55,038 bases of DNA, filler included, from Haplodiscus bocki (GCA_965655095.1; 2 parts of 2 records of this genome joined end to end with filler, not necessarily neighbours in it); one strand, 5' to 3'. Counted from the first letter of the whole stretch, positions 6,001-55,038 are shown. The notes: generated from the sequence alone by a model not told the origin. Numbers and translations are program-made.

Positions 6001-9000
6001 TCGATAAGACAAAACCTTATGGCTAAAAGTACCGGCACGTTTAAAAAAAGACCACATTAACCCTCAAACTAATCATCAAAAAGATTTCAACTCGTCAAAA
6101 AAGAAAAGCATTTGAGCCTTTATTGCAAACCGTAGTCCATGCAAATATAATGACCACGAAGAGGAGCACATTCCTTCAAAATTAGAACAAAATCAATCCA
6201 TTCGAATTCAAATCGGATTTGGAACCGAATTGCAAACGTTTCACTGACAATGCAAAAGGAGTTTTTTCAACCACAAACCAAACCCACAGGTCAAAGAAAC
6301 TCATTCCATTCAACAACACAACTATAATCACCAACAAAACTAACAGAAAAAAGAAGTCTAACCATTTTCCTTCGTTTTTGTCACATCAGTATTTGAGCAC
6401 CAGGTCCAAGACTTGTATCTATCACGAAAAGTTCATGTTTTTTTGTCTAAATTTCGCAGACCAAAAAAAACATTTTCAGCACCAAGAGGGCCAGCAACAA
6501 GCAGATAATTTAAAAAGCGCAATTTATATCTATCAAAAAACAGCTACTGCGGTGGTGAAACAACTAGAACAATGCAAGACAGTTAATATTGAAAGAAAAC
6601 TCGAAAACGGAAATATTTGTTCTCACAACCAATCGAAGCTTTAACTCATCAATACTTGCAAAAAACAAACTACATGGTGCACAACTATTTGAGTCGGAAT
6701 TATATTGCAATGATGAAAGTCATCAACCTTTATTTGAAAAACCTCGGGCTAAAGATTACGATCACATTCAAAGAACGGACCAGAATACACCTCAAGCTAA
6801 ATTGAGAAAAGACTTCATGTCGTCAAAAGAAAAACGCATTTGAGCAATTCTTGCAAATTTTCGTCCATGCAGATAATATAACGACAAAAAAAGACACATG
6901 CCAACGAAAAAACTCAAAAATTAGTCCGATCGTGATCAAACTGTTTGTGGATGACAACTGCAAACGATGTTTCATTGGAAATGCAATACGAGAAAATTTC
7001 AGCATAAAACCTGATCCAGAGATAAAAAAACTGATCCCGATTAGGAAAGCATTTAAATTCACTGACAAGATGATGAAAAACAGAATTGTATACAATTTCT
7101 TCTTTTGTGTCCGAACATCATTTCAGCACCAAGACCCAGACTTGTATGCATCTCCAGAAATCCCAGTTTCTTTCTAGTTTCCGCTGGCGAGAAACATGAT
7201 TCCGGCTACCTTAGGGCCAAGAGCTAGTCAATGCAATAACAGAAGTTCGTATGTTTGTTCAAAAACAACTACTGCGGTAAACGGATTAGAACACCAGAAG
7301 ACTGTTAGCATTGCAAAAAAACCTTAAAAACGGAACCATAGATTTTCGCAGGTAATCAATTATTTAGTTTTTCCTTACTTTCACGAATAAAAAAAACTGA
7401 AGGACATACAAACACAAGAGAAAATTTACTTTGGATTGACAAAACTCATCAATCGATAAGACAAAATCTTATGGCTAAGAGTACCGGCACGGTTTAGAAA
7501 TGACTACAATAACCCTCAAACTGATCATTGAAAAGATTTCAATTCGTCAAAAAAGAAAAGCATTTGAGCATTCATTGCAAACCGTAGTCCATGCAAGTAT
7601 CATGACGACAAAAAATGCATATTCCTTTGAAAGAAGAACAAAATCAATCCATTCAAGTTCAAAACAGGTTTGGAACGCATCTGAAAACGTTTCACTAACA
7701 ATGCAATAGAAGAAAATTTCAACCAAGAACCATACAACAGGTCAAAGAAACAAATTGCATTCCAAGAAACATTTTTAATCAACAACAAAAAGAAGAGAAA
7801 AAAGAAGTCAATTCAAATTCCCTTGTTTTTGCCAGAACAATATTTGAGCACAAGGTCCAAGACTTGTATGCATCACGAAAAGTTCAAAATTTTTCTAGCT
7901 TTCGCAGATCAAAAATTTATTTTCGTTAGCAGAAGGGCCACCAACGATCAGATAATTTAAGTGGCGCCATTTTACTTTTCAAAAGACAACTACTTCGGTG
8001 AAAGGAGTAGAACATCAAAAGACAATTATCATTGAAAAAAAACTGAAAACGGAATTCTATGTTCTCACAAGTAATCAAAAATTTTTTGATCACTACTTGC
8101 AGAAAAACAAACTGCAGGATGCGCAAACATTCGAAGTAAAGTTATCCTGGATTGATAAAGCTCTTCAATCGATATTAGAACTCATTCGGCTATACAGTAC
8201 GGGCACAATTAAAAGACAGATTTGGGAAGCTGAGTCAAAAATTAAAGAGTCATTGCAATCAACGATGCAACTATTTTCACCAACACACAAAAAAAGAGAA
8301 ATAATTCGATTTACTTTCTTTTATGTCTGAAGAACGTTTGAGCACCATGTCCGGGACTCGTATGCCTTGCCAAAAATTGAAGTTTTTTCGGACATTCGCA
8401 AGCCAAAAGTATATCTTGGGCACCAGGAGGGCCACTAACGAAATGATAGTTTAAAGAGCTCCATTTTTTTGTTTTCCGAAAGAAAACTACTACGGTGAAA
8501 GGAGTAGAATATCAAAAGACAGTAAAAAATGAAAAACGGAAATATTCGTTCCCAAAAGTAATCGATGATTTATTTCACCACTTTTTGCAAGAAAAAAAGG
8601 CTGCAGGTTGCACAGACATTCCAAGTAAAGTTCTATTGAAATGATAAAGCTCATCAATCGATATTAGAAAACTCTAGGTCTAAAGAGTACGGGCAGATCT
8701 AAAGAACAGACCGGAATACACGTCAAGCTAAAATTTGAAAAACCTTCATGTCGTCAAAAGAGAAAAGCAATTGAGTTTTCGTTGCAAACTGTAGTCTATG
8801 CAGATATGATGACGACAAAAGGAAGCCCATTCCTATAATCAGGAACAAAATGAATGCCTTCAAGTTCGAATCAGATTTGGAATCCAGTTGAAAACTTTTA
8901 ATTAACAGTGCAATAGGAGAAATTTTCAAGCAGAAGCAAAACCCACAGGCGGAAAAGCTCATTCCATTCAACGATGCAACTATAATCACCAACAAAATGA

Positions 9001-11480
9001 AGAGAAAAAAGAAGTCTTTCGAGTTTTCTTCCATTATGCCTGAACAACAATTTAGCACCAAGTCCAAGACTTGTATGCATCTCCAGAAACTCCAATTTTT
9101 TCTAGTCTTCAAATCCCAAAACTAAATTTCCAGCTACAGCAGCGCCAACAACTTGTCAGTGCAATGGTAGGCTTGTTTAGGTTCTTTAAAAAATCATTGC
9201 ATCATAAATCTTTTGATTTTCTAATCCTGCGGTAAAAGGAATAGAACATCAAAATACTGTTTACTTTGCAAAAAACCTTGACAACGGAACAATAGGCTTT
9301 CAGAAGTAACCAAAGAAATTTTTTTCCATACACTAACGAAAAAAAACCTGGAACACCTGCAACCACAAGAAAGAAAATTTAGATTGCATTGACAAAACTC
9401 ATCAATCGATATGAGAAAATCATATGCATATGAAGTAATGGCGTTTTTAAATAGAGGACCGCAAACACCCTAGACTAATCTTCGAGGAGACTTCTTATCC
9501 TCGGATTTGAAAAACGGTTGAGCAATTTTTGCAAACTGTAGTCCATGCAGATATGATGACAACAAAACGAGGCACATTCTTCTAAAAGTTGAACAAAATC
9601 AATCCATTCAAGTCGAAATCAGATTTGGAACCCAATGGCAAACCTTTCAGTGGAGATGCAATTCGAGAAAATTTAACGGGGTAGTTACAATGAAGAAAAA
9701 GCAAAGTGTTTCCACTTGCCTTCGTTTAGGTCTGAACAACGTTTGAGCACCAGATCCAAGACTTTTATGCATCTCCAAATGTTTCAGTTTTTTTCTAGCT
9801 TCCGCACACCAAGAACACTTTTTTGGCTTACTCACGGCTACCAACAAGCAAGTGCAATAACAGGCTCCATGCTTTTCATTGAAAAACAACTAATACGGAA
9901 AAAGATGTAGAACATCAAAAAAAGAGTTAACATTGAACACAAAAATTAATAGAAAAATTATTGGTTTTCAGGAGAAATGACAAAACTCTTTCATCACTGC
10001 TTACAACAAAGGAAGGCTGGACGATCCATCATCGCAAGAAGTAAAGTTGAATTGCACTGACAAAGCTCATCAAAAGATTTGAGAAAATCTTATGACTAAA
10101 AAAACGAGCACATTCAATTATTAGACCAAAAAAAACGTCAAACTAATTATTGAAAAACTTCTTGTCGTCAAAACAGAAAAGCAATTGAGCATTCATTGCA
10201 ATCTTTGGTCCATGCAGATATGATGACGACAAAAAGCAGCACATTCCTATAAAAAAAAACAAAATCAATCCATTCAAGTTCAAATGAGATTTGGAACCAA
10301 ATTGGAAACATTTCACTAACAATGCCAAAGGTGAGTTTTTCAACAAAAAACCATACCCTGAGGTCAAAGAAAATCCTTCCATTTAACGATACAACTACGA
10401 TCAACAACAAGATGAAGAGGAAAATGAAGTCTATTCAATCTCCTTCTTTTATGTCTGAACAACATTTGAGCACCATGTGTATGACTTGTGTGCCTATCCC
10501 AAAGTTCCAGTCTTTTTCTAACCTTCAACGGCTTAAAACAGTTTTCGGGCTACAGTAGGGCCACCAACTAGTAGGTGCATCAGGTTTCTTCTTTTTCTCA
10601 TTCAAAACCAACTACTGCCGTATACGGAATAGAACATCAAAAGACTGTTAACATTGACAAACACCACGAAAATGGAAAAATTGGCTCTCAGAAGTGATTA
10701 GAGGAACATTTTGTCTTTACTGGCACTAAAAAGACTAGAAGACGCGCAAACACAAGAAAAGCTTAGATGGCATTGATACTCATCAATTGGTATTGTGAAA
10801 TTCCTATGGCTAAAAAGTGGTGGCAAATTTAAAGTACAGACCAGAAAACAACTCAATTTATTTTTTTGAAAAAAGTTCGTATCTTCAAAACCAAAACGCA
10901 ATTGAGCAGTTTTTGCAAAGTTAAGTCCATTTAGATAACAAGATGACAAAAAAGGCACCAATGAGGGGTCATCAATGAGTGAGTGCCGTGTTTGGCTTCA
11001 TTAAAATCATTCCCATAACCAATAGTAAACAAATTAGAACAAAAAAGACAGTTAGCATTGGGAAAAAATCATAGAATTGGGGCTTTTTGACTTTCAGACG
11101 CAAACAGAGATATATTTCATCACTACTTGCAAAGAAATTAGGCTGAATGACATACAATTTTATAAAGTACAGTCAAAAATTGCTCTCAAAAAGCTCATGA
11201 ACTGGTAATAGAAAATCCTTGGGCTGAAGAGTACGGTCACTATTAAAGAACAGACCAGAATACCCCTCAAACAGTTTATTGTAAAGATTTCCTATCGTCG
11301 AAAGAGAAACACAAGAACACTTCTTGCAGTTTTCCGTCCATGCAGATAAAAAAAATGACGAAACGAAGCATAATCAAACAGAAAAAAAATGAGAAACCTC
11401 TATGTTCGAAATCAATGAAACGGGATATCTGATACAAAAGAACAAAGTGTTTGATTGTGAAACATTTCATTGAACCAAAA
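1..11480. repeat. Diverged tandem satellite array, ~720-bp monomer, ~16-17 copies (runs off the left edge)
   Basis: Anchor motif (g/c/t)agcaccaRg(t/a)cc and variants recur at ~157, 684, 1406, 2123, 2845, 3561, 4224, 4949, 5670, 6395, 7124, 7846, 8340, 9053, 9745, 10468 (spacings mostly 713-729; 527, 663, 494, 692 where monomers are shortened). Other anchors (aagacttcatgtcgtcaaaa, gtccatgcaga, tagaacatcaaaagac, ggctaaagagtacgggcac) keep the same order in each unit. Confidence 0.95.
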
Positions 11481-34486: not shown

Positions 34487-34867
34487 TTATTGGCAAAACT
34501 TCGAGCTGTTGGTTTGGTGAGTAATTTCCATTTCCTGTATTATCTTATCAGTTTCCGTTTTAATATTTTCCGTATCAAACTTGTGGAGCAACTTTTTTTC
34601 AATTGAGATGCCATAAAAGTTGAGTTGAATTTTTTTGGTATCATTCTGTGATAAATTTATCAATTGTTTTTCCTGTTTAGAATCCAAATTTTTCGGTCTA
34701 CCCGCACTTTTTCGATTTTTGAAATGTCCGTGGGAATTATATCTTCGAATAATATGCCAACAAGTGCTTGTTGGAACAGAGGTAGCCATCGAAATTGAAA
34801 ATAAACTATATCCTTTGTGGTAAAGTGAAACTACCTTTCGTTTAGTTTCAATACTGCAATTAGACAT
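34487..34867 (-). pseudogene. Tc1-family transposase N-terminal fragment (paired-like HTH)
   Basis: SIETKRKVVSLYHKGYSLFSISMATSVPTSTCWHIIRRYNSHGHFKNRKSAGRPKNL contains the HTH and GRPK linker typical of Tc1. Frameshifted downstream; DDE domain missing. Confidence 0.85.
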
Positions 34868-35169
34868 CCTCAAACTCTTTGCGCCAACTAATTTTATGAA
34901 TATTGTCAATTGTTTTCACCGAGAATTAAGTTTCTCAAATCTAATTTCTGTTAATTAGTATTTTATTTCCTCAGAAGTATACCGTCCGAAAAATTTCTCA
35001 CAGTAAGGAGTCCGATTCTGTAATCACACTAGTGTATCATCAGCAGTGTACATCCTTTTCTCATCAGCGTATTGTACTAGTTAACAATGGAAAGCAAGTC
35101 ATTCTTGTTACATGTAGTCGCAACAGGTTCCGTGTTTGTTGGTGATCTAGCAGCCAAAGAGAAACAGAG

Positions 35170-36179: not shown

Positions 36180-38967
36180 TCACCGTTACCACAATTATAC
36201 AAATCTGCGATTCTGTGTTGCAAAGTTCGCTATTGCTCGTCTTTCATCTCATTTACTTCATAATCGGTAGGGAAGACTCCCCAATTTCTCGAAGTATTAT
36301 TCAAACTAATGGCGCGGAAATCCAGCACATCATTGTTTGCAGCATACGTCCAGATGTTTTTTCCCTGTTTCTTGTATCTTTCTGCTGGGACCCTATATCA
36401 CGGATCTCAAAATTATTACGTTTTTGAGATGAAGAATATTTAAGGAATCATATATATGTAATTCAAATACAGTGCATATCTTGCAATTTTTAAATTTCCC
36501 TAAGACAAAAGATCTATATGGCAGCCGGAATGCTATGCAGACCAACTTTTTCTGAAAAACCAAAATCTGTTGAAGCATTGTTTTTCTCCCAAGGCCATAC
36601 AAAAATACGCCATACTGGACAATCGGGGACACATATGCCCTAATGTAAGCAAGTAAGTGAGATGTGTTCAATGTTTCCCTAAGTTTATAGACAATACCGC
36701 ATTGTTTCGAAAGCTTCTCGACAACTTTTCCATTATGTATATCAAAATCTAGCTTTTTAACGAAATAATTTCCCAAATACTTGTAACTGACGCAGGCAGC
36801 AATGGTTTGTTCATCAAGTTCAATACTTCCATTAACCTTTGCTCGCATCTCAAAAATTACAAATTTGGATTTCGTATAATTCAACTCGGTCCTATTTAGG
36901 GCTAACCAAGTTTGTAAATAAATCAGATCTCCAGTCTCCGAAGGCGAGTTTTCTATAAGAACTGTGTCATCCGCATATAGTAACAATTTACCTATGGTGT
37001 TTGCATTTGATCCAATGACGTTTATGTACACAAGAAGAAGAAGCGGTCCGAAAATTGACCCTTGAGGGCACCTCGTTTAACGATTTGAAGGTTGGAACTT
37101 TCAGAATTCACATTCACAAACTGTTTCCTCTCTGTTAAAAAGCTATTCATCAGTGCATAAACGTTTCCACGGACACCCAAGCTATGCAATTTTTTGAGTA
37201 AAATTTCATGATCTACAGTATCGAAAACTTTGCGAAATTCGAGAAAAACGCCCGTCGAGTTTGTTTTAGTGGCCCAATTTGATTGTATCGTTTTTCACAA
37301 CAACGTAGCAGCTAGAACAGTATCTTTATTTTTTCTAAATCCAAATTGATTTTCTGTCAGTAATGAAAACTTCTCAAGATATCTTATTAAGCGTTTCTGA
37401 ATAACTTTCGCGAAGTTTTCTGATAAATTTCCTAAGATCGAGTTAGGTCTACAATTGATGGGTGAAGCTTTTTTACCTTCTTTATGAATCGAAATGACTT
37501 TAGCTATTTTCATTATTCTCGGGAAAATGCCTTTAGAAATAAATTTGTTCGAACCGATACACAAATATTTGCAAAGAATTTCAGCTGAATGCTTCAAAAT
37601 TTTCACGTCAATATCATCGAAATTGATGGACTTTTTGGTTTTTAATTCTTTGAATATTGTACAAACTTCTTCATCAGTGACATACGAAAAGTACATTGAC
37701 TGGGTCTGTTGATTTTTGTCTGATGGAATGCAATAATCCAAAATCGGTGAAACTCTGGGCTCACAAGCATTCAAAAGATAATCATTGAAAGCATTTGCTG
37801 TCAAATCTCCATTTATTTTGGTATCAAAAACTTCTCCCTTCATTTTCCTGATATATTTGAAAAACACCTTGGGATTTTAATGATCAATTTTGTTTTATAC
37901 GTCTCCTCCTTTAGCCAATTTAATTTCTATATTGATTTCGTTTCTTTTGCCTTTGTAATTTAGATGTGCTTTTTCTGATTTTTAGTCAAGCCAGAGCTGG
38001 AAGAGTTTATCACGAATTTTTATGTGTCTTTTTATACGATTTGTTATCCACGTTTTCCGAGAGGAGAACTTTTTTGAGCTCTTGGCAAGGAAAATATTTA
38101 CCCGTTACTCTTTTTATGACTTCAACAACCTTAGTGATGTATGCTTCGCCAGACTGACCAGTCTCTACAATTTTTCCCAATGTGTGTGCAAAATAAAACG
38201 AAAATTTTTCGCTCTAATCTCTGTTCTCAAATTTTTTCAAGCATCGAAAACGGTATATACATTCCATAGCTTCGTATTCAAGATCCAATTTGAAATCAAA
38301 GCTGTAAAGATCATAAAATGATGTTTTTTCAATTGTATATTTTAGCAGTGGTACATTGCCAAAAATGGCATCTATATAAGAGCTAGAAGTTTTTGTTTCT
38401 CGGGTTGCTTCGCTCAAATTGATTAGGCTTAAACAATGTGCAGCCATTGTGTTTTCTAACTTCTTCCGTAAGACTAGCTCATCTAGCAAAAGATCAATGT
38501 TAAAGTCACCGGCTACCACTTGCGGTAAACCTCCATTTCTCTCTAATATTTCTTCAATGTGATTTAGATAGTTGTTTTTGTTTCGCGATGTTTGGCAGTA
38601 GAAGCAAGAAACCATGATTTTGCTTTTTTTTATTAGCTACTTTAACCGAGATGGACTCAAAGTCTTCATCTGTTCGTATTAATTCAGCTTGCAAGCACTC
38701 TGATGAATATATCGCTGCTCCACCACCTCGTTGTTCACTCCTAAAGCTTGTAAACGGTTTTTGATAACCTTCAAGGCAATGAAGATTAACATCGTCGTTG
38801 TTTTTAAACCAAGTCTCTGTCAAAGCTATGATCGACGGCTTTCTTTCCTTTATCCAAATTTCCAACTTTCCTAAGTTTGCACAAACCGATCTGATATTAT
38901 TATAGAACAAGGTTATTCCCTCTACACTACAATTAGTTTTTGAAAGTTTACCGTATGTGGATGCCAA
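36180..38967 (-). pseudogene. LINE ORF2 (APE endonuclease + reverse transcriptase)
   Basis: APE: FYNNIRSV, IIALTETW, RGGGAAIY, VAGDFNIDLL, TRETKTSSSYIDAIF. RT: KIAKVISIHKEG, RPNSILG, NQFGFRKNK, QGSIFGPLL, YADD (36966-36977), YKYLG. Confidence 0.92.
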
Positions 38968-43811: not shown

Positions 43812-44213
43812 TCAGTGTCGTGGCCATCTTCTGGGCCAAAGTTTTGCAGCATCTGGCTGTGGAAGAAACCCGCTTCAGGATGAGGATCATTCTCGGAGTC
43901 GTCCTCATTCGTTCCCTGGCTTGTACCCAATGCGTTCCGGGACGCCTCCGGAGTAATTCCGGAGTGGCCATGCAGTAGCGGGTTCATGAGAGTCGTCAAG
44001 ACGTGCTAATGCGCCTAGTATGCGGTTTTTCGTTCTACTGAACTCTAGTGATAACCTTTTAGTGACTCTTCCCTCAATTTCCTCAGAAACTTGAGTTATG
44101 TAGTCTTCCTGCGATCTGGGAACATTTGACTTTTGTGCCAAGTTGCTCCTAGTATGTTCCTCGCATTTTTCCCTATCTAATGCTGCCAATCTTCTCTTGT
44201 TTCGAGTTGCCAA
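43812..44213 (-). pseudogene. gag: 5' part of a probable Gypsy gag/ORF1, truncated
   Basis: MATRNKRRLAAL...YITQVSEEIEGRVTKRLSLEFSRTKNRILGALARLDD, frameshifting into MNPLLHGHSGITPE...GPEDGHDT; starts ~120 bp after the LTR. The gag identity is from position and recalled similarity, not a conserved capsid motif. Confidence 0.55.
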
Positions 44214-44332
44214 TTTCTATGGGAAAAGTAATGATCAGTCGTTAATACTTGATTATCGTTTGCAGGAGGAAAATCAATTTCGGTTTTTTAACAGTTTTGA
44301 ATAAGGCAACGAAGGGAATTAACAATACTGTG

Positions 44333-44517
44333 TGTTATCGTCAGTACTCCGAAGCAATAATAACACTTCTGTTTTGTACTTTCGTTTCTCCTTCTTGAAC
44401 CTTTACCTGGCGGGAAACATAATTGTTTGCACGGCAAGTCAAGGTACAAATAGGAAAAAGTACTTTATACATTATCACATCAAAGTCAAAAATGCCAACT
44501 CTGGCGGGAATTAAACA
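44333..44517 (-). repeat. Putative short LTR (185 bp) of element B
   Basis: Minus strand TGTTTAATTCCCG...GATAACA (TGTT/AACA termini), TATAAAG at ~44463-44469, purine tract directly upstream, gag-like ORF downstream. Confidence 0.55.
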
Positions 44518-44518
44518 A

Positions 44519-44541
44519 CTTTTCGTTCCTTCTCTTCCTTC
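44519..44541 (-). other. PPT of element B
   Basis: Minus strand GAAGGAAGAGAAGGAACGAAAAG, one base before the LTR TG. Confidence 0.6.
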
Positions 44542-45486
44542 ATAGGACGCGTCCTTTCCATCCTTCGACAGAAAATGGACGGACCTAATCCATCAGAGAT
44601 GGACATCAAAGTGCCTATTCCCGCGCCGACGTTTTATTTACAGTCTTGGTAACTGTATACTCCATAGATGGAAAATACTAGGAATTTCTTCAATTAGGAG
44701 AGTAAAAATTAAAATAATTAACACGGAAAAAAGAAGGAAATAAAATAAAATACAAAATACAAGACTTTAGAACAAAAACACATTTAATCATCTTCATGCC
44801 CATTTCATCACCAAAAAACTTTTTGACTTCTACTCTTCTAGAAAGGAAGAGAAACTGGTAGCACTACTAGTTTACTCCTCGTTCCGACAAGTAGCTACTA
44901 GTGGTATCCCGAACAGCTCCGTAGCCACTAGTAGTATTAGTTGAGTTTAAGTAAGCCGTACTCAAATGAGGAGTGAATACGGAGTCTTTCCGTATTCACC
45001 ATAGCACTGCAGCACAGCATAGTAGGAGTGGTTTTGTGACGTCACCAGACTAGTGACGACGGAACACGTACGGAACAAATATTCACTCCGAGAAGCAATT
45101 TTATTACAGACAAGTCACGCTACTTCTAGCATTACTTTATATTAAAGCACCGCTGTAAACTGCACTTATTGCAATCAATCAATGTAATTGTACCAAAAAA
45201 GATGGATTTATATTTATTAACTAAATAAAGAGATTAATTTTAAAACAGTACCTTTAGAGTTAAAAGGCTCTATGAATACTTGTATGTTCCGTAACGGTTC
45301 CGTCCTAGTCTGGATCAGTTCAAAAAAGTGTTCCGTATAAAATACATACCACTATATTTCCATACATTTGTTATGGATACGTATTAGATACGTATCCGTA
45401 TAAATGCACAATGATTAAAAATATTCAAGGGGTAATTAGTTAAGAATCTGCTTAGTAGTATTTTAGTTTGAGTTTCTCCCTGAGCA

Positions 45487-46173
45487 TTAGGGTGTCTTTC
45501 TGGTTGGTAGGGGCTGGCCGCATGCCTCGCATGTGAGCTGCGACACTCGCCCATTTTGAAGAAAAGACATCCCAATACTCAGTTTTCTCTTTTGTTGTGG
45601 TGGAGGCGGCGGTGTGCAGGACGGTGTGGATACAGACGATACTTATCCGGGTTCATTGAAGTCAAATGTTTCGTTAGGAGAAATATCCCAATAGACTCGT
45701 CTGGGGTCGTCGTCCGTTTAAAATGTGGCGTCGTCCGTTGTGGTGTGCGTTGTCTCCCAGCCTTCAATGGTACTCACATTCATTGGGGGCTTAGAAATTG
45801 GAGACGGGAAAGATGATTCCAGTGATTGGGGGCTGTATTCATCCGCTCGAATCACAGCCATATTAGCCTACACATGAAAAGGGTTGTGCTGCAAGTTGAG
45901 ATCATTGCGGCTGCGCGGCATAAATGGATTTTGATTACCGAACCCGTATGGAAATGTGGGTTCGTTAAAGTCCGAGTCTATAGTAACTATTTGTGGCTCC
46001 GGAGAGGCGACGGAGGAGACTGTGATTGTCTCCGTTGCCATAGCTCCTGATTGCTCCGTAGAGTTGAGGATTACCGGTGTATTATTCCTGATCGGGCTAC
46101 TTTCTTCTGATGAGCGCTCCACATAGAAAACGTCTGAAACTGTATATGAATCCAAAGAGAGATTTTGGTACAT
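45487..46173 (-). pseudogene. Accessory ORF in element sense: Ser/Thr/Pro/acidic-rich protein with QKRK and C-terminal CEACG
   Basis: One frame from ATG 46173 to TAA 45487-45489 (229 codons including the stop), with three internal stops and no frameshift. Confidence 0.55.
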
Positions 46174-46449
46174 GCCTATTGATACTTGGGAATGCGGAAG
46201 TTTTTAAAACAGTTGAAAGCTGCTAAGATCAACAAAGTGGCTTCAAGAAGTGATGATATAACTGAAAGTGAGTCGGCACACACCGTCAAGCAGGAGATGC
46301 TTTGAAGTTGCCGCGGTTGCAGTCGAAGTACTAAAGTCACTTACTTGGCGGTATAACTGAAGTTGATGAATGGTAAACAAATTAAATGTGAAATTAGGAA
46401 GGAGGAAACTTTGAGTTTCATTCCTCAATGTATCCTTGAAATATCATGC

Positions 46450-46457
46450 TGACGTCA
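46450..46457. promoter_or_regulatory. CRE palindrome TGACGTCA between the two divergent ATGs
   Basis: Perfect TGACGTCA in the 388-bp gap between ATG 46173(-) and ATG 46562(+); a second copy is at 45037-45044. Function is inferred only. Confidence 0.35.
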
Positions 46458-46561
46458 TTGCTGGCAGACAAATCGGTCAAACTGGAAATTAAATATTTCT
46501 GACATTTGATGAATAAAATTATAAATCCACCATGTAATTGTTGAAAGCCACGTCGTTCGTC

Positions 46562-49500
46562 ATGCCTGATGAAAAGAAAAAACGTCGTGTTGTTGTGGGA
46601 GGCGAGAGTAGTCGTCGTTCGGAGGGTTCCGGAGCAACCCCGGATGTTGGAGTGTCCGTTAACGATCAGTCCCCCCCCCCCCCCGATCGCCCCATTGTAC
46701 GTGAGGCTGTTGTCAGTGAAGAGGCGAGGAGGCCAGCGGAAGACAAGGGCAGAGAGGTTGATGGCGAGTCGGAGATCATCTCTGTGGGTGGACCTCTTGG
46801 AATTGCAGGTGGGTGCGAGTCCGAGGGATTGACGTTTGAGGAAGCAGTCGGGAGAGCTGGTCTCATTTCAGAGACAGAGAGTGCATTGTATACATCTGGA
46901 CTACCAATTTGTTAGTTTTCAAATTTCTCAATAACCATTAAACTTTCATTAGGATTCCACACTGGCCAGTTGTTCCATCCGTTAAGTTAAATTTCATGTG
47001 CTCACAAATCATCAGAAATTGACTTCGCCATCGGGTTGTGTTTTAGTGTAGGATTCTGCGGGAAAACCTGCCATAAAGTCGGTTCGTGGCAGTGTTTGTG
47101 AACAGTCTGCTTCCGGCAGCGAGTTCGAAATTGGAGGTGCAATTTCAGGAGAAAACTTTCCCTGGAGGGCTTCCCGGAGAGCTCCGTTGGCGGCTGTAGC
47201 TGAGAGTTAGTTTTGATCTCGCCTAATTATCGTGTTAGTGCTTCCAGCGTGTACCTATACTCGTGTTTTGTGTTGTAGGCGCTGAAGAAGAGACGGGAGG
47301 AGATGGGGCAGGAGAAGTGTCCACTGGCGTAGAGAGCGAGGGCGTGGTGCACAGGAGAAGGACTGTTATTACCAGAAGACTGATACCGCTCACCGGGGGC
47401 CCCAGCATTGTCTTCTTGCGGCCGACTAGAGCCAGAGTAGGAGTCGACAGCTGTTAGGGAAGGCGTTCGATGAGGTTATACTTTGTTCCAAATGAGTAAT
47501 ATTCTAGTATTACTCCTCGTTTGGTCCATGTTTGTGACTCATATTTTCCTGTTTTAGATCAGTACTCCGGAGATTCTTCGTCTTCCCTCATTCAGACCAC
47601 AGGACATCAGCTAGTGTCTCTTTGTCTCTCTTTGGTGGGGGAGGAGAAACATCAGCTCCTGGGTCCATTAATGACCAGTTAGTACTCCGGAACTGTTCCG
47701 TATAACTCCGTAATTCTTTGGTTTCACCATGTGTTTTTTGTTGCCGGAGCTTGATGAGGTGTTGGGCAAGCTCACCCAGGCGCCATCAGTGTCGCATCAG
47801 CAACAACATGTGCCTGACACAACGGACACCAGTGGAGAGGACACTGATGTTGATCAGCCTCGGAGACGGGTTCGCTCCAGGCGCACTTTCAAATTGAAGT
47901 AAAGGTACGCTGTTGGCGAGCTGGCTCAATTCTTCGTCACCGGGCCCAGTGATGCTGCAAACGAGGTGAGCGTGTTTTATTGCTGTGTGTCGGAAGGATG
48001 TGTCGGTTCTCACTCACGGAGGATACGAGATAATCCGGCATTTCCAGGGACACCACCATTTCGCTCGGAACCAACGGCCTCGCCTGGAGACACCTAGTTG
48101 GCGGGTGTTGGATTTCGAGGGCAACCCACTCCCCGAAGACGAACTTGAGAGACAGCGAGACAAATTTATGCTTGCCCCCCTTGTAGTCCGGGACCGAGAA
48201 TATCCCTTTCGGTAGACCTGATTCCGGATGCATCCGTAAACGTTGATCCACAGTTGCCAGTGCTGGCGAAATCTCCGGCCTCGTAGATGCACTTCAGTTG
48301 GGTGGGAGCTACGAGCTCGTGGTAAAACTGTGGGAGAGATTCGTGCTGACAACCAGTTGGATCAATGTGACTGTTGCTTGGTCTCGCGATGAGGCTCTGG
48401 TTAGTTCCGCATTGTCTCCGGATGCCAAATGCACTGATTAATTTAACTTTGGATTAACTTTTGTTTTCCTTTTTTAATCCAGTCTTCTGAACTGGATACT
48501 TCCGCGCATTTTGACACGTGTGGTTGACTGGATGAAGGCACACTGGCAGTTTGGTGAGGAATTTTCAACTCATGGCTCTGCAACGTGGGTCTACATCAGG
48601 ATGTGGAAGGCGGGTGATATTGTGCGGGTAGCTATGGCCATATTTGACCGATAATATGGTGATGCAAACAGCGAACTGGCAATTTTGGGGAAAATTCTGA
48701 GCGCAGTTGGCAGTGGGGCATCACTCGTTTCACATTCTGGTGGCTCTCGCACCCTGGTGGACTGCTACAGGGAGTCTCTTGGGAGTGGCTACACAAAGAC
48801 CCTTGTAGATAAAATCCGATTATTGATGTGCTGCTTCTGAAACGGTGCCTTCAGAAAAATGCAACAGTGGTTTCTGGGACATTAGACACTTTTTCATTGA
48901 CGGAGATCATTGTTACTCGATTGAAGGGGGCGGAACATCGAGACTAGATGCAATCGAGGCAGCTTCTTCGAATGGCCATAGAAACGGACGTTCTCTCTCT
49001 TCCCGGACTTCTGAAAGTTATCAGTAACATCATCGGTGTGTGGCCACTAATAGTGTCCTTTTTAAAAGAAGCTGGGAAGAAGGACAGCGGAGATAATCTT
49101 GTGGTATGGTTTTTTCTTTTATTTTCCTTTTCGTAAAAGGCCTATATTTATTAACGTTCTCTTCTTTAGAAGAAAAGGATAGATGGATACTTTTACATCG
49201 ATCAGCTGAGCAGAAGGAAGATCCGTCTGTTCCATCTTATCCTTGAAATGTGTTGGTATTCACGTGATATGTCACATTTGGGTAGTATTCCGCAATTACG
49301 CATGCATCTTTTGTGTGGAGATTCTAAGAGTCAACGTGTAGCTTTCCTAGTGCTATACTTTTTGCCAAATTGTTAGGGATTTCTAGGAGTCAACTTGTAG
49401 CGTTCCTAGTGGCACCCTCATTTGGAATTGGTTGGGGATTATTAGGAGTCAACCCTTAGCGTTACTAGTGGCATCCTCATTTCCAAATTCGGTACTCAGG

Positions 49501-50921
49501 GGTAATACTCTCTTTCAGACAGCGACAATTTTGTCGCACAGCGGTCTCCTGGAAATGGGTACGGATATCGGGCGTATGGCGAGCTGTCCTATTTCGTGTA
49601 CTGCATCTTGCAAAAGATCAAGAAGAGTGGATCGCTTCCCTTAGTAGAGAAATGTGAAAACTACGTGCTTCCAAAACATTCTTCGTTCGCCGCTATTGAG
49701 GAGGAGCACTTTCTGGTCGGAACTCGCGTTCATGCAGCCCTAGAGAAAATGTCAAGCTCCTACTTGAACAAAGAATTCTGGAGGCAATGCGCGTCGCTTC
49801 CCTGATGAGTTCTGCAGCACCATTTTGTCACCCGTAGCCGCCAGATCTACGCTGGGTCAAGGAGTTAGCTGTTTCTGCCCTGAAAAAGTTCTGGGAGGCG
49901 ATGAACAAGCCGCTTTTTTCTTGTACGGGCAGTTACTGGATGAACTTATTGAATGTGTTTGGGAGAGGGGGTCCAATGTTGAGGCTTGCAACGCCGATTT
50001 CTAGTCTTTTGTCTGGGAGCAGCGCCAACTGGAGCGTCATTCGACAAGGAGGCGCCCTGATGTACGGATGTTGAGCGCCTACTTCGCTCAACAGACCGGA
50101 TTTCAAAGTCGCAGGCACCTCTTCGGGGTAGGTTCAGTATTATTTTAGGATGCACTTCCTTGTAAGCAGTAATCAACATTATTTGTTGTAGGTGTTCCAA
50201 ATAACGACTCTGTTTCTTCGGGATTCAGTTGAAGAGTTGCCCGCATTCACTGTAAGTTTGGATGGAGTTGCCTTGAACCGCCGAGTTGTGGATAAATCGA
50301 TTGCTTGCATACATGGTTTTGTACGGTCACCCCACATTACCCAGCGCGATTTCTTCAGCGACAATGGGATCTACTTGTTTCTGCCGTCAATGCTGCTGGC
50401 TCGATGCGGGACCAATCGACTTGTGAGCGTTGGGCGAATGTGCTCCCTGAGGGCTATAAAGCCACTTTATTGGATTTCATGCTTTGGTCTTCAGGCGGAA
50501 AGAGGCACGGGATACATCCGAGAGATGGTTCGGAGTGCGCAGTGTGGAGTCATCTGATGTTGGGGAGCCATCTTGTTGGACTGGAGTGCGGTTATCAGAT
50601 GTTGTTGAGGTTGGGCAGGTTGAGTACCTGTCTGATTCTATGTTTGCTCGGGATCAGCCCTGTAGTAGTGGTACTACAATGTCACCTCGAAGCACTGGAA
50701 AAGGAAAGCGCAAGAGAAGTGCGACACCCGCTCTCGCTGTTACACCCAAGAGATTATTCGACTTTGACGACGAATCAATTATTTTTCCGAAAACGGGATG
50801 AGTGTAATTTGCAGGTCCAAACCTTGGAAGCGCTCTAAAAAGCCAAGAAAAAACTGCTGCGTCTCGTCGGAGTTGGCGCAGTTATCGTGCTGCACCAGTT
50901 GACCGGTCAAGTCCCCGTTAA
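46562..50921 (+). pseudogene. Multi-exon antisense gene inside Gypsy element B encoding a zinc-finger protein, possibly hAT-transposase-derived
   Basis: Approximate exons: 46562-46910, 47047-47205, 47279-47452, 47558-47677, ~47747-48399, ~48478-49103, 49519-50127, 50192-~50921. Donors GTTAGT/GTTAGG/GTATGG/GTAGGT; pyrimidine-rich AG acceptors at five introns. Finger CCVCRKDVSVLTHGGYEIIRHFQGHHH; basic tail KGKRKRS. Confidence 0.7.
49319..49492 (+). repeat. 59-bp tandem repeat x3 inside intron 6 of the antisense gene
   Basis: gagtcaac at 49328, 49387 and 49446, each followed by tagc(t/g)tt(c/a)ctagtg. Confidence 0.85.
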
Positions 50922-51036
50922 CTTACATATCATTCGCAATTGTATTTTAAAATTTAGAGTTTTTAGTTAACAGTCTATGGCTCGTTGTCCTTTTACAGAG
51001 TTGAGTAGTATTCGAGTATGTCGCCAGGGTGTATCC

Positions 51037-51348
51037 TTAAAATGTCAAGGATAACTTGTACAAACTCCGTATCGCATCCGTAGCCAAAATGTTGGGAATT
51101 TCCGGGAATGTCTCCGGAAGTCCTCCGTAGGGCATACTAGGATGCGCTAGGCAGGTATTTCTGGAACGTGGGGCTTCAATTTCTGCAAATTGGAAAATAT
51201 CTAGGACTGAGTGGCTAGCAATGCAGGGTTGTTCCAGAACTGATACTAGGAGTTTTCTGGGTAGGTACGTAGGTGCTCCGTAACGGTTCCGTAGCACTTC
51301 TTCAAAATACACATATGGTGCACGTAGTTGTTCCGGGTACCATACCAA
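51037..51348 (-). CDS. Small ORF (103 aa) immediately after pol of element B; unknown function
   Basis: Open ORF 14 bp downstream of the pol stop; the ORF-track start is CTG and the first ATG is at ~51342. No domain recognised. Confidence 0.3.
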   Translation of the reverse strand: MVWYPEQLRAPYVYFEEVLRNRYGAPTYLPRKLLVSVLEQPCIASHSVLDIFQFAEIEAPRSRNTCLAHPSMPYGGLPETFPEIPNILATDAIRSLYKLSLTF

Positions 51349-51362
51349 GACAGATTTGTAAT

Positions 51363-54300
51363 TTAATATCTGTAGTCGTCATTGCAATTCAATTTAAGAT
51401 TGTGGCGTGGATCAAACTTTCTGCTGCGGGGATTAACATCGGTAGGGCTCAGCGGCTCTGAACTTGCTTCCGCATCAGGCTCCATGTAGTGATCCTTATC
51501 GGTTCCGTCACTTGCTTGAACAATGTTGGGGAAAATCTCTGGGGTGTCCTCATGTATGAGTCCTGGAACGGTACACGTTTCGTCATATGGTGAGTCATGT
51601 CTCACTGTGATTGCGGGTGAGTTATCACTATCGGTCTGATGTTGGCCATTGTCAAGAATAGGCGCGTTTCAAAATCGGACTGCCATGCTCTGGCGTACAG
51701 ATCATCATGTTTTATAATGACTTCAGGGTCAGGTTGTCATTCTTGTGATTTTGATTGTACTTCAGGTATGGGTTGTCTGGGCGTGATTAGACGTACTCTC
51801 GTGCCTTGAAGGACTTGGGTTTTGTTCGTTCTGAGTTTTCGTACCAAATAATTGCTATTTGGTAAGGCTTTTTCAACAATGTAAAGGCCTATGCATCGGA
51901 ATTCTGTGAAGGGAATTTTACCACACTGGTGATCTGGTTTAGGCTGTAGAACATACACGTATTGTTGTTCTTTGAGGTTCGAGGCATTGGTTTTTTATCA
52001 TAATACGCTTTGTATTTGGAATAAGCTTGCATGGTCTGATTTCGGACATCATAGAAAATCATTTCCGTTTGTTTGAGAACATCTTCCGCAGTTTGTGAAT
52101 TTGGCGTGAGTATGCTTTGCGGACGGATGCCTATTTTTAAGTCTAGGACTTTATATGGAATACGTCCGTGAAATACTCTACTGGATTCACATCCAATGCT
52201 TGTGCGGTAGGAAGTGTTGTAATTCAAAACGGCAATGTTGACATACTTAGGCCAAATGGATCTTCGTTCACATGTTTCAATCTTCAGGGTGTTCTTGAGT
52301 GAGGCTTGCAATCGTTCAAGCATTCCAATTGTTTGCGCATGCTTTGTTGTGGCATTTTGTAGGGTGAATCCAAGAACTTCAACCACTTCTTTGATTACTT
52401 GGGACATGAGCACTGATCCCTTGTCAGAATTTATAGTCGTCGGCAAATAAGCATGTTTAGTCACGATATTGATTATGATGTTTGAGATCGTTTTCGCGTC
52501 TTGGCTGGAAGTGGGGTAGGCAGAAAAATATCTAGAAAACACGTCCATGGCTGTTACTATGATTTCACAGCCAGCAGACGGAGGAAATTCCGGAACCAAA
52601 TCTATTTGCACGGCGTCTTCGTGTGTCGCGATGTCTTCACTTGGATTCTGCAGGGCTAGCCGTGTGAGCCTATCATCAACTCGTGATTCTCCAATGCATT
52701 GCTCACATGACATGACCCTTTGTTTGATCAGTTTGGCCATGTTTAGAGAGTAATACTTTTGTCCGTATGCAATTATCGTTTCAGTAACTCCGGGGTGCTT
52801 GCCAAATTCTCCGTGCAGGCTCCAGAGTACTTCAACGACTAGTTGTTTTGGTATCAGCATTTGGTAGTTTTTGATGTTACCAGTCTCTCCGTGATATTTC
52901 AGGAATAACAGTCCATCTTTGTGGATGATACGGTCTTGATTCGCTTTGTACTGCTTAAATCGTTTGTCTGTTGTTAACAGCACTTCATCATATGGCTGGC
53001 CAAGAGTTTTGAGTTTCAAGTTTTTCAAGATTAGATCAAAACCTTGTTATACTGGTATCCGTGCATTTGCTTTGATTCCGTGTATGGAGCACGACGTAGT
53101 GTTTCCGTCAATCTTTGTAAATTCTTTCATAGTTGGCTTCATTAAAGAGGGTTCCTCGTGTGCTACCCATTCTGTTGCCTTTTTCCGAGACTGTTCTCTC
53201 CTTTCGAAGGTTTTTTCTTCAGCCTCATCTTCAGCAGCTGCTTGTTCGGAGAAGAACTGCTCCATATCTGCAACATCTGAGGAGGATGTTGTGACTTCAA
53301 TGGGCGTTGTCTGTACACCTTCCCTGATCTTGAGACGGATCTTCTCCGTGACTTTCGATTCTAGTCGCGAGAAAATTTCAACTGCTGTGTTTACTGAACC
53401 AGCAATATGTGCCATTTTATAGTTGAACTGCAGCAGATAATCACCTGCGTTCCACAAAGATGGTGGAACAGCTTTTGTCTGGAAGAATCGTGTGACCGAT
53501 TTGTTGTCCGTCAGAACAATTGTTGGTTTTGTTGCTTCCCACAAAATGTGGGCGAACTCGAGAGATGCTATGTACATTGCCAAGAAATCTTTCGAGTAAA
53601 TCGGAACCTTCAGTTGTGCGGGGGAGGAAGTTCTTGATCAAAATGAGACAGGCGCAAAAGCCTTTCTCTTTGATTGGATCTTCTTGTCTGAGTTGTCTTC
53701 AATCATGAGGGCATAACCTGCGCTTCAGAAGCTTGCGTCCGTCATTAGGACAAGCTGCTTTCCAGGAATGGGTTGTTTCAATGCTAATTCACAAGCATCA
53801 CTCAGTGCTTTATTTACTGAATCAAAGGTTTCTTTCAACTCTGAGGTGATGTTAATTGGGACTTCTGATTTTGAGAGTTTATAGAAGCTGTTGAGTTTTT
53901 CAGCCATCCTGGGAATGTAATCTCTGTAACATTTCACGAACCCCAGATGTCGCTGAAAAACCTTCTTCGACTTAAAGAATCTCAATTTATCAAAAAAAAA
54001 TTCGAATCTGGTTACTTTATGGTGATACTGCCTCAGATGAACAGGTTCGTCCAAGAAATTCAACTTGCCTGACTCGAAAGTGGTACTTTTTGAATCTCAG
54101 TTTCAATCCTGCATTGCGAATGCACTGGAAGACTGCCCGAATATTCCGCGTAGGATCCGTAGCATTATTGGCTGCTGTTCCAATATCATCGACGTATTGG
54201 GCACATTGGTCAGCCTTGACAACTGGGTCCAAGTACTCGCGCGTGAAGCTTGAAAAGGCAGACACAGATCTGCTAAGGACTTCTGCAAGTCTCCTGTAGG

Positions 54301-55038
54301 CAAGGGTTCTGCTGGCAAGATTAAAGCAAGTATCTCCACAGACCGTTGGTCCGCCATCTGCAAACAATGGTAAGCCTGAGAGCAGTCAAGTTTGCAGAAA
54401 AGACATTTCCCTGCCCAGTGTTTTGCTGCGTCTGACAAAGTGCTGACGGAGTGATTATTGTTAATATAAGCATCTGCAATCAGGGTGTTGATTTTTCCTA
54501 GATCCACCAGGAGACGCAATTTCCCGTTGGGTTTTCGCTGCGCAAAAATGGGATTTGAGTATTTTGAGAAGGGTAGGACTGTGATAATCCCGTTTTTGTG
54601 CACTAGGGCAAGTTCAACAATTAGGTGTTTTTTCAGGTGGATCGGCATCGGTAGGCTTTGGCTGTAAACAGCTTTGTCATCTTTCCGTGTGAGTCTCACT
54701 TTAAATTCTGTGTTCATTCCAATGTCCATTCTGTGTCTGGCAAATGTATCATGGTACTCGACCAGGATATTTTCGATTGCATGTTTTTCGGTTTCCGTTA
54801 GCAGCGTATCTGTCCAGTCAAATCGCTTTAGAAATTTCATTCGTGATTCTACGTCATCACTTGGATTCAGTTTTCCTTTTCTTGTAGTCCACGCAGTTCT
54901 TTAAGGATTCGTATCTGTATCGGAGTGTGATCCTCGGTTTTGCCAGGATTTTTGGGTGTTGGAAACCAGAAGGTATTACTCTGTTGTTCCGGTTTATTTG
55001 TTCTGAGTAATTCACTCAGATAAGTAGTCAGATCCTGA
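51363..55038 (-). pseudogene. pol: pol of element B (RT, RNase H, integrase, GPY/F region), frameshifted
   Basis: RT: PIFAQRKPNGKLRLLVD, KLDCSQAYH, YVDD (54185-54196), VEFLG. RNase H: LMTDAS, VLTDNKS, NTAVEIFSR. Integrase: HGEFGKH...CEQC, QIDLV, SDKGS, GMLER. GPY/F-like IGLYIVEK. Confidence 0.95.

Follow-up and report, generated by a model that had tools for sequence, protein, structure and literature searches.

Evidence for a spliced, selectively maintained antisense gene in a Ty3/Gypsy retrotransposon family

A nine-exon gene antisense to a Ty3/Gypsy element

The window analyzed here is a stretch of 55,038 nucleotides of Haplodiscus bocki DNA (GCA_965655095.1; two parts of two records joined with filler), whose piece 27903-55038 terminates in a Ty3/Gypsy pol on the minus strand. 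Its segment 43816-55038 contains an old and dead copy of a long terminal repeat (LTR) retrotransposon of about 15.7 kb belonging to this group, of which the 3′ two-thirds are present. On the plus strand, opposite in direction to the minus-strand pol, GC-rich stop-free blocks in shifting frames are separated by AT-rich stretches between positions 46562 and 50921. These blocks are, with very high probability, the exons of an element-borne, spliced antisense gene that has been maintained by selection.

The gene model was derived from an alignment of five copies, namely the window and the loci L001, L002, L006 and L007, and comprises nine exons separated by eight introns; donor and acceptor sites as well as intron lengths are conserved in the aligned copies. 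In the window, the exons and the lesions accumulated in them are located as follows.

46562-46910, plus strand: exon 1, with the ATG at 46562, coding for an acidic segment (isoelectric point (pI) 4.2 in the intact copy) and followed by the donor GTTAGT at 46911
47047-47205, plus strand: exon 2, interrupted by an in-frame TAG at 47049-47051 in the window copy
47279-47475, plus strand: exon 3, lacking 1 nt at 47394; a further 1-nt loss, in a G run, affects the family donor at 47475
47558-47677, plus strand: exon 4, bordered by the donor GTTAGT at 47678; the window has a changed acceptor of intron 4
47748-48399, plus strand: exon 5, coding for a basic cluster, a CCHH zinc finger and a helical region; stop at 47900-47902, 2-nt loss around 47983, 1-nt losses at 48214 and 48267
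48478-49103, plus strand: exon 6, coding for a predicted β-β-β-α-β-α unit; the acceptor of intron 5 is changed in the window; stops at 48652-48654 and 48945-48947, 2-nt gain at 48811
49170-49251, plus strand: exon 7 (82 nt), between intron 6 (49104-49169) and intron 7 (49252-49518)
49519-50127, plus strand: exon 8, coding for a helical region; 1-nt gain at 49783, stop at 50002-50004
50192-50921, plus strand: exon 9, coding for a basic tail with a KRKR cluster and ending with the stop codon at 50919-50921; 4-nt losses at 50371 and 50478, stops at 50799-50801 and 50805-50807

Five of the eight donors read GTTAGT (ACTAAC as the complement on the genomic RNA), the other three being GTATAC, GTATGG and GTAAGT, and all acceptors are composed of a pyrimidine tract ending in AG. 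The intron phases are 1, 1, 1, 1, 0, 0, 1 and 0. With the exception of intron 7 the intron lengths are nearly fixed (136-138, 72-73, 82-83, about 70, 72-78, 66-70 and 64-70 nt). Intron 7 is variable in length and contains a 59-bp minisatellite, found by a tandem repeat finder at 49322-49488 in the window; its units measure 59-66 bp, with 2.8 of them in the window and more in L006 (11579-11829). The GC content is 51-53% in exons and 37-43% in introns across the copies (51% versus 37% in the window), and the short exon 7 is conserved at the protein level in the distant copies L003 and L004.

Much of this arrangement had been recognized in an initial annotation of the window. The donors listed there (GTTAGT at 46911, 47206, 47678 and 48400, GTTAGG at 47453, GTATGG at 49104 and GTAGGT at 50128) are present, as are the AG acceptors ending at 47046, 47278, 47557, 49518 and 50191. 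The premature TAG reported to follow intron 1 is indeed in frame at 47049-47051, and the acceptors 4 and 5, described as mutated, are so in the window and canonical in the other copies. Other details had to be revised: the presumed single intron 6 (49104-49518) is really two introns around the 82-nt exon at 49170-49251, the donor of intron 3 had been placed at 47453 whereas the family donor is at 47475 and the other copies do not contain a GT at the 47453 position, and the product, estimated at roughly 1,100 codons, comprises 1,179 codons in the family.

The complete element

The youngest copy of the element, 15.7 kb in length, is represented by L007 and L008, which are two orientations of one insertion. 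Its LTRs (1,877 bp, TG..CA ends) are 99.8% identical and the insertion is bordered by a 5-bp target-site duplication (TSD), ATGAG, with the antisense cassette inside. The polypurine tract (PPT) AAAAAGGGGGG is located directly 5′ of the 3′ LTR, and a primer-binding site (PBS) beginning with TGG follows the 5′ LTR. According to Pfam, the L007 pol harbors RVT_1, RT_RNaseH_2/RT_RNaseH, Integrase_H2C2 and rve in this order, and its gag matches Retrotrans_gag, DUF1759 and zf-CCHC. With this pol domain order, the LTR, TSD, PBS and PPT, and a gag of the CCHC type, the element is a member of Ty3/Gypsy (Metaviridae). In every long locus the gene is enclosed by a pair of LTRs that are 74-99.8% identical to each other.

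The start codon of gag is found about 400 nt into the LTR (L008 10001 within the LTR 8527-10403), with the PBS inside the gag reading frame, so that the 3′ LTR repeats the first ~134 gag codons. At L014 (1-4310) and L019 (1-8442) tandem elements are found which have one LTR in common, the LTR and the additional open reading frame ORFx (see below) being followed by gag and pol of the next copy.

Conserved position and abundance of the cassette

The window was compared with 11 further loci, ten of them from the ENA assembly ERZ26859043 and one being an 11.8-kb contig of a JGI Cyphastrea metagenome (L014). Eight short contigs were taken from the JGI metagenomes Ga0126342 and Ga0126343, the latter of which is a Cyphastrea sp. 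coral metagenome according to a preprint. A stony coral is the most likely host of the family. When mapped by tblastn with the proteins of the youngest copy, all 12 loci, including L014, display the same order, namely LTR, ORFx on the minus strand, the antisense exons 1-9 ascending on the plus strand, and integrase (IN), pol and gag on the minus strand. This order is retained between lineages with pol identities of 64-94%, some of only 64-75%, and antisense-protein identities of about 26-100%. At the DNA level the window is collinear with L001 and L002 from 43815 to 55034 (74-80% identity), and its segment from 43815 to about 44900 matches L001, L002 and L005 twice, marking the LTRs. The placement of the cassette between pol and the PPT/LTR, as initially annotated, is therefore seen in 12 of 12 loci, but the LTR is not the immediate neighbor, as ORFx and a 388-bp intergenic region intervene.

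A phmmer search of 1.84 billion representative sequences with an 81-residue zinc-finger block (47970-48212) yielded 251 proteins, each a representative at 50% identity, 164 of them at E ≤1e-10, all 251 being short unnamed ORF fragments from ERZ26859043. Word-indexed searches with longer natural ORFs gave, as clusters at 90% identity, at least 1,013 for exon 5, at least 675 for exon 6 and 178 for the C-terminal half, and several clusters of the family contain 50-100 members. Many of these database 'proteins' read through introns in frame, so that the conserved donors are translated as recurring Val-Ser-Ser tails. In a DNA run the summed depth on the family is very high, consistent with a high copy number, and among the contigs of this run an intron-less joined form was not found at introns 5 or 6. 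This is an abundant family with recent activity.

Deletion derivatives occur as well. At L001 (9803-10022) the antisense exons 1-4 are missing and the region of the start codon is joined near exon 5, and at L017 (1007-2364) exons 3-4, exon 7 and parts of exons 5 and 8 are absent.

Coding state of the copies and selection

For the analysis of the coding state, exons were joined at the conserved sites without altering any base. L007 then reads through 1,179 codons to the terminal stop with a single internal stop, located in exon 6. L006 lacks 1 nt in exon 7 and has two internal stops as well as an altered donor 1, and L002 has six frameshifts and three stops. With eight frameshifting indels, eight in-frame stops and the changed acceptors of introns 4 and 5, the antisense gene of the window is a dead relic, as are the pol and ORFx of the same copy.

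The ratio of non-synonymous to synonymous substitution rates (dN/dS; Nei-Gojobori, in the family frame) between L007, L006, L002, L001 and the window amounts to 0.12-0.17 for the antisense gene and to 0.23 when the two most decayed copies are paired, below the value of 1 that had initially been proposed as a test. For the same pairs the values are 0.13-0.17 for pol, 0.16-0.21 for IN, 0.13-0.23 for gag and 0.08-0.16 for ORFx. Since the dN/dS of the antisense gene is like that of the replication genes at dS values up to about 1.5, it has been kept as a protein throughout the divergence of the lineages, under purifying selection as strong as that on gag and pol. The claim that this is a heritable, element-encoded gene is borne out by its presence in 12 of 12 loci inside a TSD-flanked element, the absence of inverted repeats of its own and selection equal to that on pol.

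Aligned intron sites show a divergence (K) of 0.12-0.38, which is below the synonymous divergence (K 0.34-0.38 versus dS 0.9-1.5). Splicing constraint on short introns, constraint on the sense genomic RNA or CpG decay in exons may underlie this difference. Divergence is furthermore uneven between pairs: dN between the window and L007 is 0.21 for pol and 0.13 for the antisense gene, and between L002 and L007 it is 0.11 and 0.20, respectively, which suggests recombination between lineages.

ORFx and a putative internal promoter

ORFx is located on the sense strand and comprises 225 codons in intact copies (L007 7780-8457, minus strand). Its product is rich in Ser and Pro, has a basic C-terminus of the PPPPPRRKRR type and is without a Pfam match. 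ORFx and the antisense gene are arranged head-to-head about 380-390 bp apart, and the DNA block 46355-46559 between them is one of the few stretches outside pol that can be aligned to L003-L005 (pol DNA identity 68-72%). It harbors a perfect palindromic cAMP response element (CRE), TGACGTCA, at 46450-46457, 33 nt further on a TATA-like TAAATA at 46490-46495, and about 70 nt further the ATG. A 17-nt block containing the CRE is found at the same relative position in 8 of the 12 loci, including the divergent L014, L018 and L019. Judged from this conserved motif, an internal CRE promoter probably drives the antisense gene, and it is possibly bidirectional, also serving ORFx.

Other features of the window

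The remaining parts of the window copy are listed below.

43816-45545, minus strand: 3′ LTR (1,730 bp, TG..CA ends), the sole LTR of this copy in the window, with limits set by alignment to the L007 LTR
45546-45560, minus strand: decayed PPT adjoining the LTR, located by alignment with the PPT of L007 (sense strand AAAAAGGGGGG)
45505-46173, minus strand: ORFx remnant, interrupted by stops, which at its end overlaps the beginning of the LTR and the PPT and matches L007 ORFx in tblastn at 67% identity
46174-46561, no strand: intergenic region of 388 bp between the head-to-head ORFx and antisense gene, with the putative promoter
51366-52611, minus strand: decayed integrase region of pol, from the tblastn map with the proteins of the youngest copy and Pfam
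51889-53028, minus strand: ORF with Integrase_H2C2 and rve (Pfam)
52660-55034, minus strand: pol segment coding for RNase H and reverse transcriptase, truncated at the end of the piece, with RVT_1 at 54017-54367

The 3′ LTR carries the gag start codon and the first ~130-134 gag codons (43817-44213, minus strand), as identified by a match to the gag N-terminus. The ATG of the antisense gene at 46562 is separated from the LTR by 1,017 nt and by ORFx. Upstream of the Gypsy copy, ORF translations show a Tc1/mariner-like helix-turn-helix fragment (34487-34909, minus strand) and a non-LTR retrotransposon with endonuclease-like and reverse-transcriptase-like ORFs (36393-38967, minus strand) in DNA of 32-38% GC.

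Features of the antisense protein

In L007 the product of exons 1-4 comprises 274 residues, is acidic (pI 4.2-5.8) and is rich in Ser, Thr, Pro and Gly. Exon 5 contributes a basic run and a single Cx2Cx16Hx5H finger (residues 354-380), and exons 6-9 encode a basic part (pI 7.8-9.6) with a KRKR cluster near the C-terminus. The acidic, disordered N-terminus and the basic tail described in the initial annotation are hence found in the intact protein, as is the finger, which is intact in the other copies but cut in the window by the 2-nt loss around 47983. AlphaFold predicts a helical region followed by a β-β-β-α-β-α unit (residues 277-355 of P0178, predicted local distance difference test (pLDDT) about 75) and an all-helical C-terminal half.

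Pfam gave no consistent match for the plus-strand ORFs of the window, the long ORFs of the young copies or 89 family members. The zf-BED model was not matched, and only 3-4 out of 50 members gave hits to generic C2H2 models, with E values of 0.1-1.7. Likewise, the C-terminal hAT dimerisation domain PF05699 was not found in 39 members at E values up to 10, no bZIP match was obtained with Pfam, and no RNase H-like match to the predicted β-α unit was found with Foldseek, the VIA-wide search or the Atlas fold search. The best VIA hit (Z 5.5) is on a helical hairpin and is not meaningful. Matches to P450 sequences of the PDB, obtained with single proteins and profiles, were rejected as chance (E ≥0.06).

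A language-model feature search returned clusters of zf-C2H2_12, zf-BED, FAM200, ZBED5 (FAM200-ZBED5_RNase-like) and GTF2IRD2 with scores of 0.78-0.85; the hAT-type scores are below the reliability line of this search, 0.9. In the Atlas feature search, neither the exon-6 part alone nor the C-terminal half gave a usable match, and since the exon-6 part alone is without matches, the hAT-type language-model matches are driven by the finger-bearing part. An acidic residue is conserved at the end of predicted strand 1, and strand 4 is followed by Gly-Gly in all lineages, which, if the unit is RNase H-like, makes DDE activity unlikely; the DDE residues that the initial annotation had proposed to look for are accordingly not indicated at this position. 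Inverted repeats flanking the gene were not found, the best pair (27 nt, 74% complementary) being internal, nor was an 8-bp duplication around it, the only duplication being the 5-bp one of the retroelement. The suggested capture from a hAT transposase has the language-model look-alikes below the 0.9 line on its side, and no match in Pfam, PDB sequences, Foldseek, VIA or the Atlas fold search backs it; we regard it as a weak lead.

Proposed mechanism and alternative explanations

The observations are best explained by a Gypsy family that carries an integral spliced antisense gene, an explanation which as a whole we consider highly likely. The integrated DNA copy would be transcribed from the internal promoter (CRE about 110 nt, TATA-like box about 70 nt upstream of the ATG) and the antisense pre-mRNA would be processed by the host spliceosome. 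The RNA that is reverse-transcribed would be of the gag-pol strand, where the antisense introns would read CT..AC and be unspliceable, so that every new copy would receive them unchanged. This antisense-intron logic predicts a conserved set of introns, as observed in the 12 copies. The product would most likely act in trans in the nucleus as a nucleic-acid-binding factor needed by the element, and might control transcription or chromatin at the element's own copies or handle its nucleic acids. As suggested by the zinc finger and the basic clusters, a role as nuclear regulator of the element's own expression or silencing is a tentative possibility, to which we give less than even weight.

Chance ORFs were rejected, as splice sites, phases and intron lengths recur in every compared copy and dN/dS is 0.12-0.17. 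A nested DNA transposon, for instance a hAT-like one with its own multi-exon transposase inserted into one Gypsy copy, would account for the weak language-model look-alikes among hAT-derived zinc-finger proteins and for the BED-like finger spacing. However, the cassette has the same place and orientation in 12 of 12 loci, including lineages with 64-75% pol identity, lies without flanking terminal inverted repeats (TIRs) within a TSD-bounded retroelement, and diverges along with pol at the same dN/dS, and neither hAT nor BED nor dimerisation models of Pfam are matched even at E up to 10; this origin is extremely improbable. Nearly as improbable is conservation owing to a cis-acting function of the region in the sense genomic RNA or in the DNA, with the plus-strand frame being incidental. 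The raw identity of introns, which equals that of exons, and a K of introns (0.34-0.38) below dS (0.9-1.5) would agree with such a role. Against it, the plus-strand frame, and no other, shows a 6- to 8-fold deficit of non-synonymous relative to synonymous change, indels in the exons of young copies are frame-preserving, with L007 having 1,179 codons and one stop, and protein similarity outlasts DNA similarity in L003-L005, L018 and L019.

A host gene may alternatively have been transduced once and since been carried as a passenger or as a decoy benefiting the host, not serving the element. The multi-exon structure, the cellular-type CRE/TATA promoter and the weak similarity of the finger region to hAT-derived host proteins would fit, and capture in antisense is the only way for a retroelement to keep introns. 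Yet no copy was seen outside an element, no annotated host homologue was found among 1.8 billion representatives and 5.8 billion clusters, where every match is an unnamed ORF fragment of this kind of element, and neutral cargo would hold neither a dN/dS of 0.12-0.17 at dS >1 nor eight pairs of splice sites, which makes a passenger quite unlikely. The integral antisense gene preferred here leaves room for an ancient capture with later co-option by the element.

Several points weigh against this interpretation. All loci other than the window were fetched via matches to the antisense protein, so that pol relatives lacking the cassette were unsampled, and with respect to cassette presence the window alone is an unbiased sample. 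Among the five aligned copies none is fully open. No canonical poly(A) signal was found on the strand of the gene within 1 kb downstream of its stop; the 3′ end of the antisense transcript may overlap IN. In three RNA-seq runs carrying the species label, 0 of about 11 million reads per run fell on the young copy L009, which is no test of expression as the organism is possibly not in these runs. Neither a homologue nor a related fold was found in Pfam, PDB sequences, Foldseek-PDB, the VIA-wide search or the ESM-Atlas fold library, and the AlphaFold models have a mean pLDDT of 57 for the N-terminal half (140 rows) and of 38, and are thus unusable, for the C-terminal half (39 sequences). The coral host is deduced from one metagenome label, and the function of the antisense gene is conjecture.

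Comparison with known systems

The intron logic proposed here has an engineered counterpart. An intron antisense to the element transcript survives reverse transcription, which is the basis of engineered Ty1, L1 and retroviral reporters. The same logic would apply to the present family, except that it is natural here, involves eight introns and is maintained by selection.

A viral parallel is HBZ of human T-cell leukemia virus type 1 (HTLV-1), which is produced from an antisense mRNA after splicing and influences viral as well as host transcription in the nucleus; sites of the CRE type take part in HTLV-1 regulation. In HBZ the start lies in the 3′ LTR, a single intron is present and the product is a bZIP protein of about 200 residues. 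Both are protein-coding genes on the minus strand of an LTR retroelement. Unlike in HBZ, the start and putative promoter are internal in the present family (about 1 kb from the LTR), introns number eight and the product is six times larger.

With hAT transposases and the ZBED, FAM200, GTF2IRD2 and ZNF862 proteins the antisense protein has in common an N-terminal CCHH finger spaced like a BED finger, followed by a region of helices and the predicted β-α unit. In contrast to hAT, Gly-Gly is found at the would-be second carboxylate, and TIRs, an 8-bp duplication and Pfam, PDB or fold matches are absent.

Additional antisense ORFs have been described for plant Retand/Tat, Grande and RIRE2 elements and for deltaretroviruses (PMC11963269). 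In Retand the region between pol and the 3′ LTR spans 2.9-6.6 kb and the antisense gene is present in nearly all active copies (PMC11963269); the Grande antisense gene is transcribed from its own promoter, as stated in an entry of the reference list of the same paper. Like Tat/Retand, Grande and RIRE2, the present family has a long region between pol and the 3′ LTR (about 6.3 kb) with an antisense gene and tandem repeats, and for the plant genes a DNA-binding, nuclear and regulatory role has been proposed as well (PMC11963269). Contrary to the plant elements, the host is an animal (coral) instead of a flowering plant, neither TRP28 (PF04195) nor any other Pfam domain is present, and the gene has eight conserved introns, 1,179 codons and an extra sense ORF arranged head-to-head. 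Concerning animals, an annelid study mentions antisense extra ORFs in general terms only (PMC8220671), and a paper on extra ORFs of bdelloid rotifers contains no antisense genes. The initial statement that such an architecture was not known from an animal Gypsy family is not contradicted by the literature search, in which, with subscription journals outside its coverage, no description was found. Antisense accessory genes are already known from plants and deltaretroviruses; what is new here is a large, multi-intronic animal example.

Significance

The exons of this family are likely to be called host genes or hundreds of orphan ORFs during genome annotation, and public collections already hold them as unnamed fragments. 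Overlapping sense and antisense transcription units could furthermore feed small-RNA pathways.

A more far-reaching scenario is that the retrotransposon has domesticated a catalytically dead hAT-like transposase of the FAM200/ZBED5 type as its eight-intron antisense gene, with an internal bidirectional CRE promoter also serving ORFx, and that its product would associate with DNA or chromatin of the element itself, counteracting silencing or guiding integration. We consider this unlikely; if true, the antisense gene and ORFx would constitute a two-gene regulatory module comparable to the accessory genes found in complex retroviruses, and its carrier would be a cnidarian Gypsy element.

As regards the integral antisense gene itself, the roles of the known antisense genes of LTR retroelements are mostly unknown, and the present family provides an abundant, recently active and selected animal case. 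Its thousands of natural copies at graded divergence make it tractable for questions of self-regulation, anti-silencing and targeting. A 'simple' retrotransposon can, as it appears, keep a cellular-style gene with its own putative promoter and eight introns on the strand that is never reverse-transcribed in spliced form.

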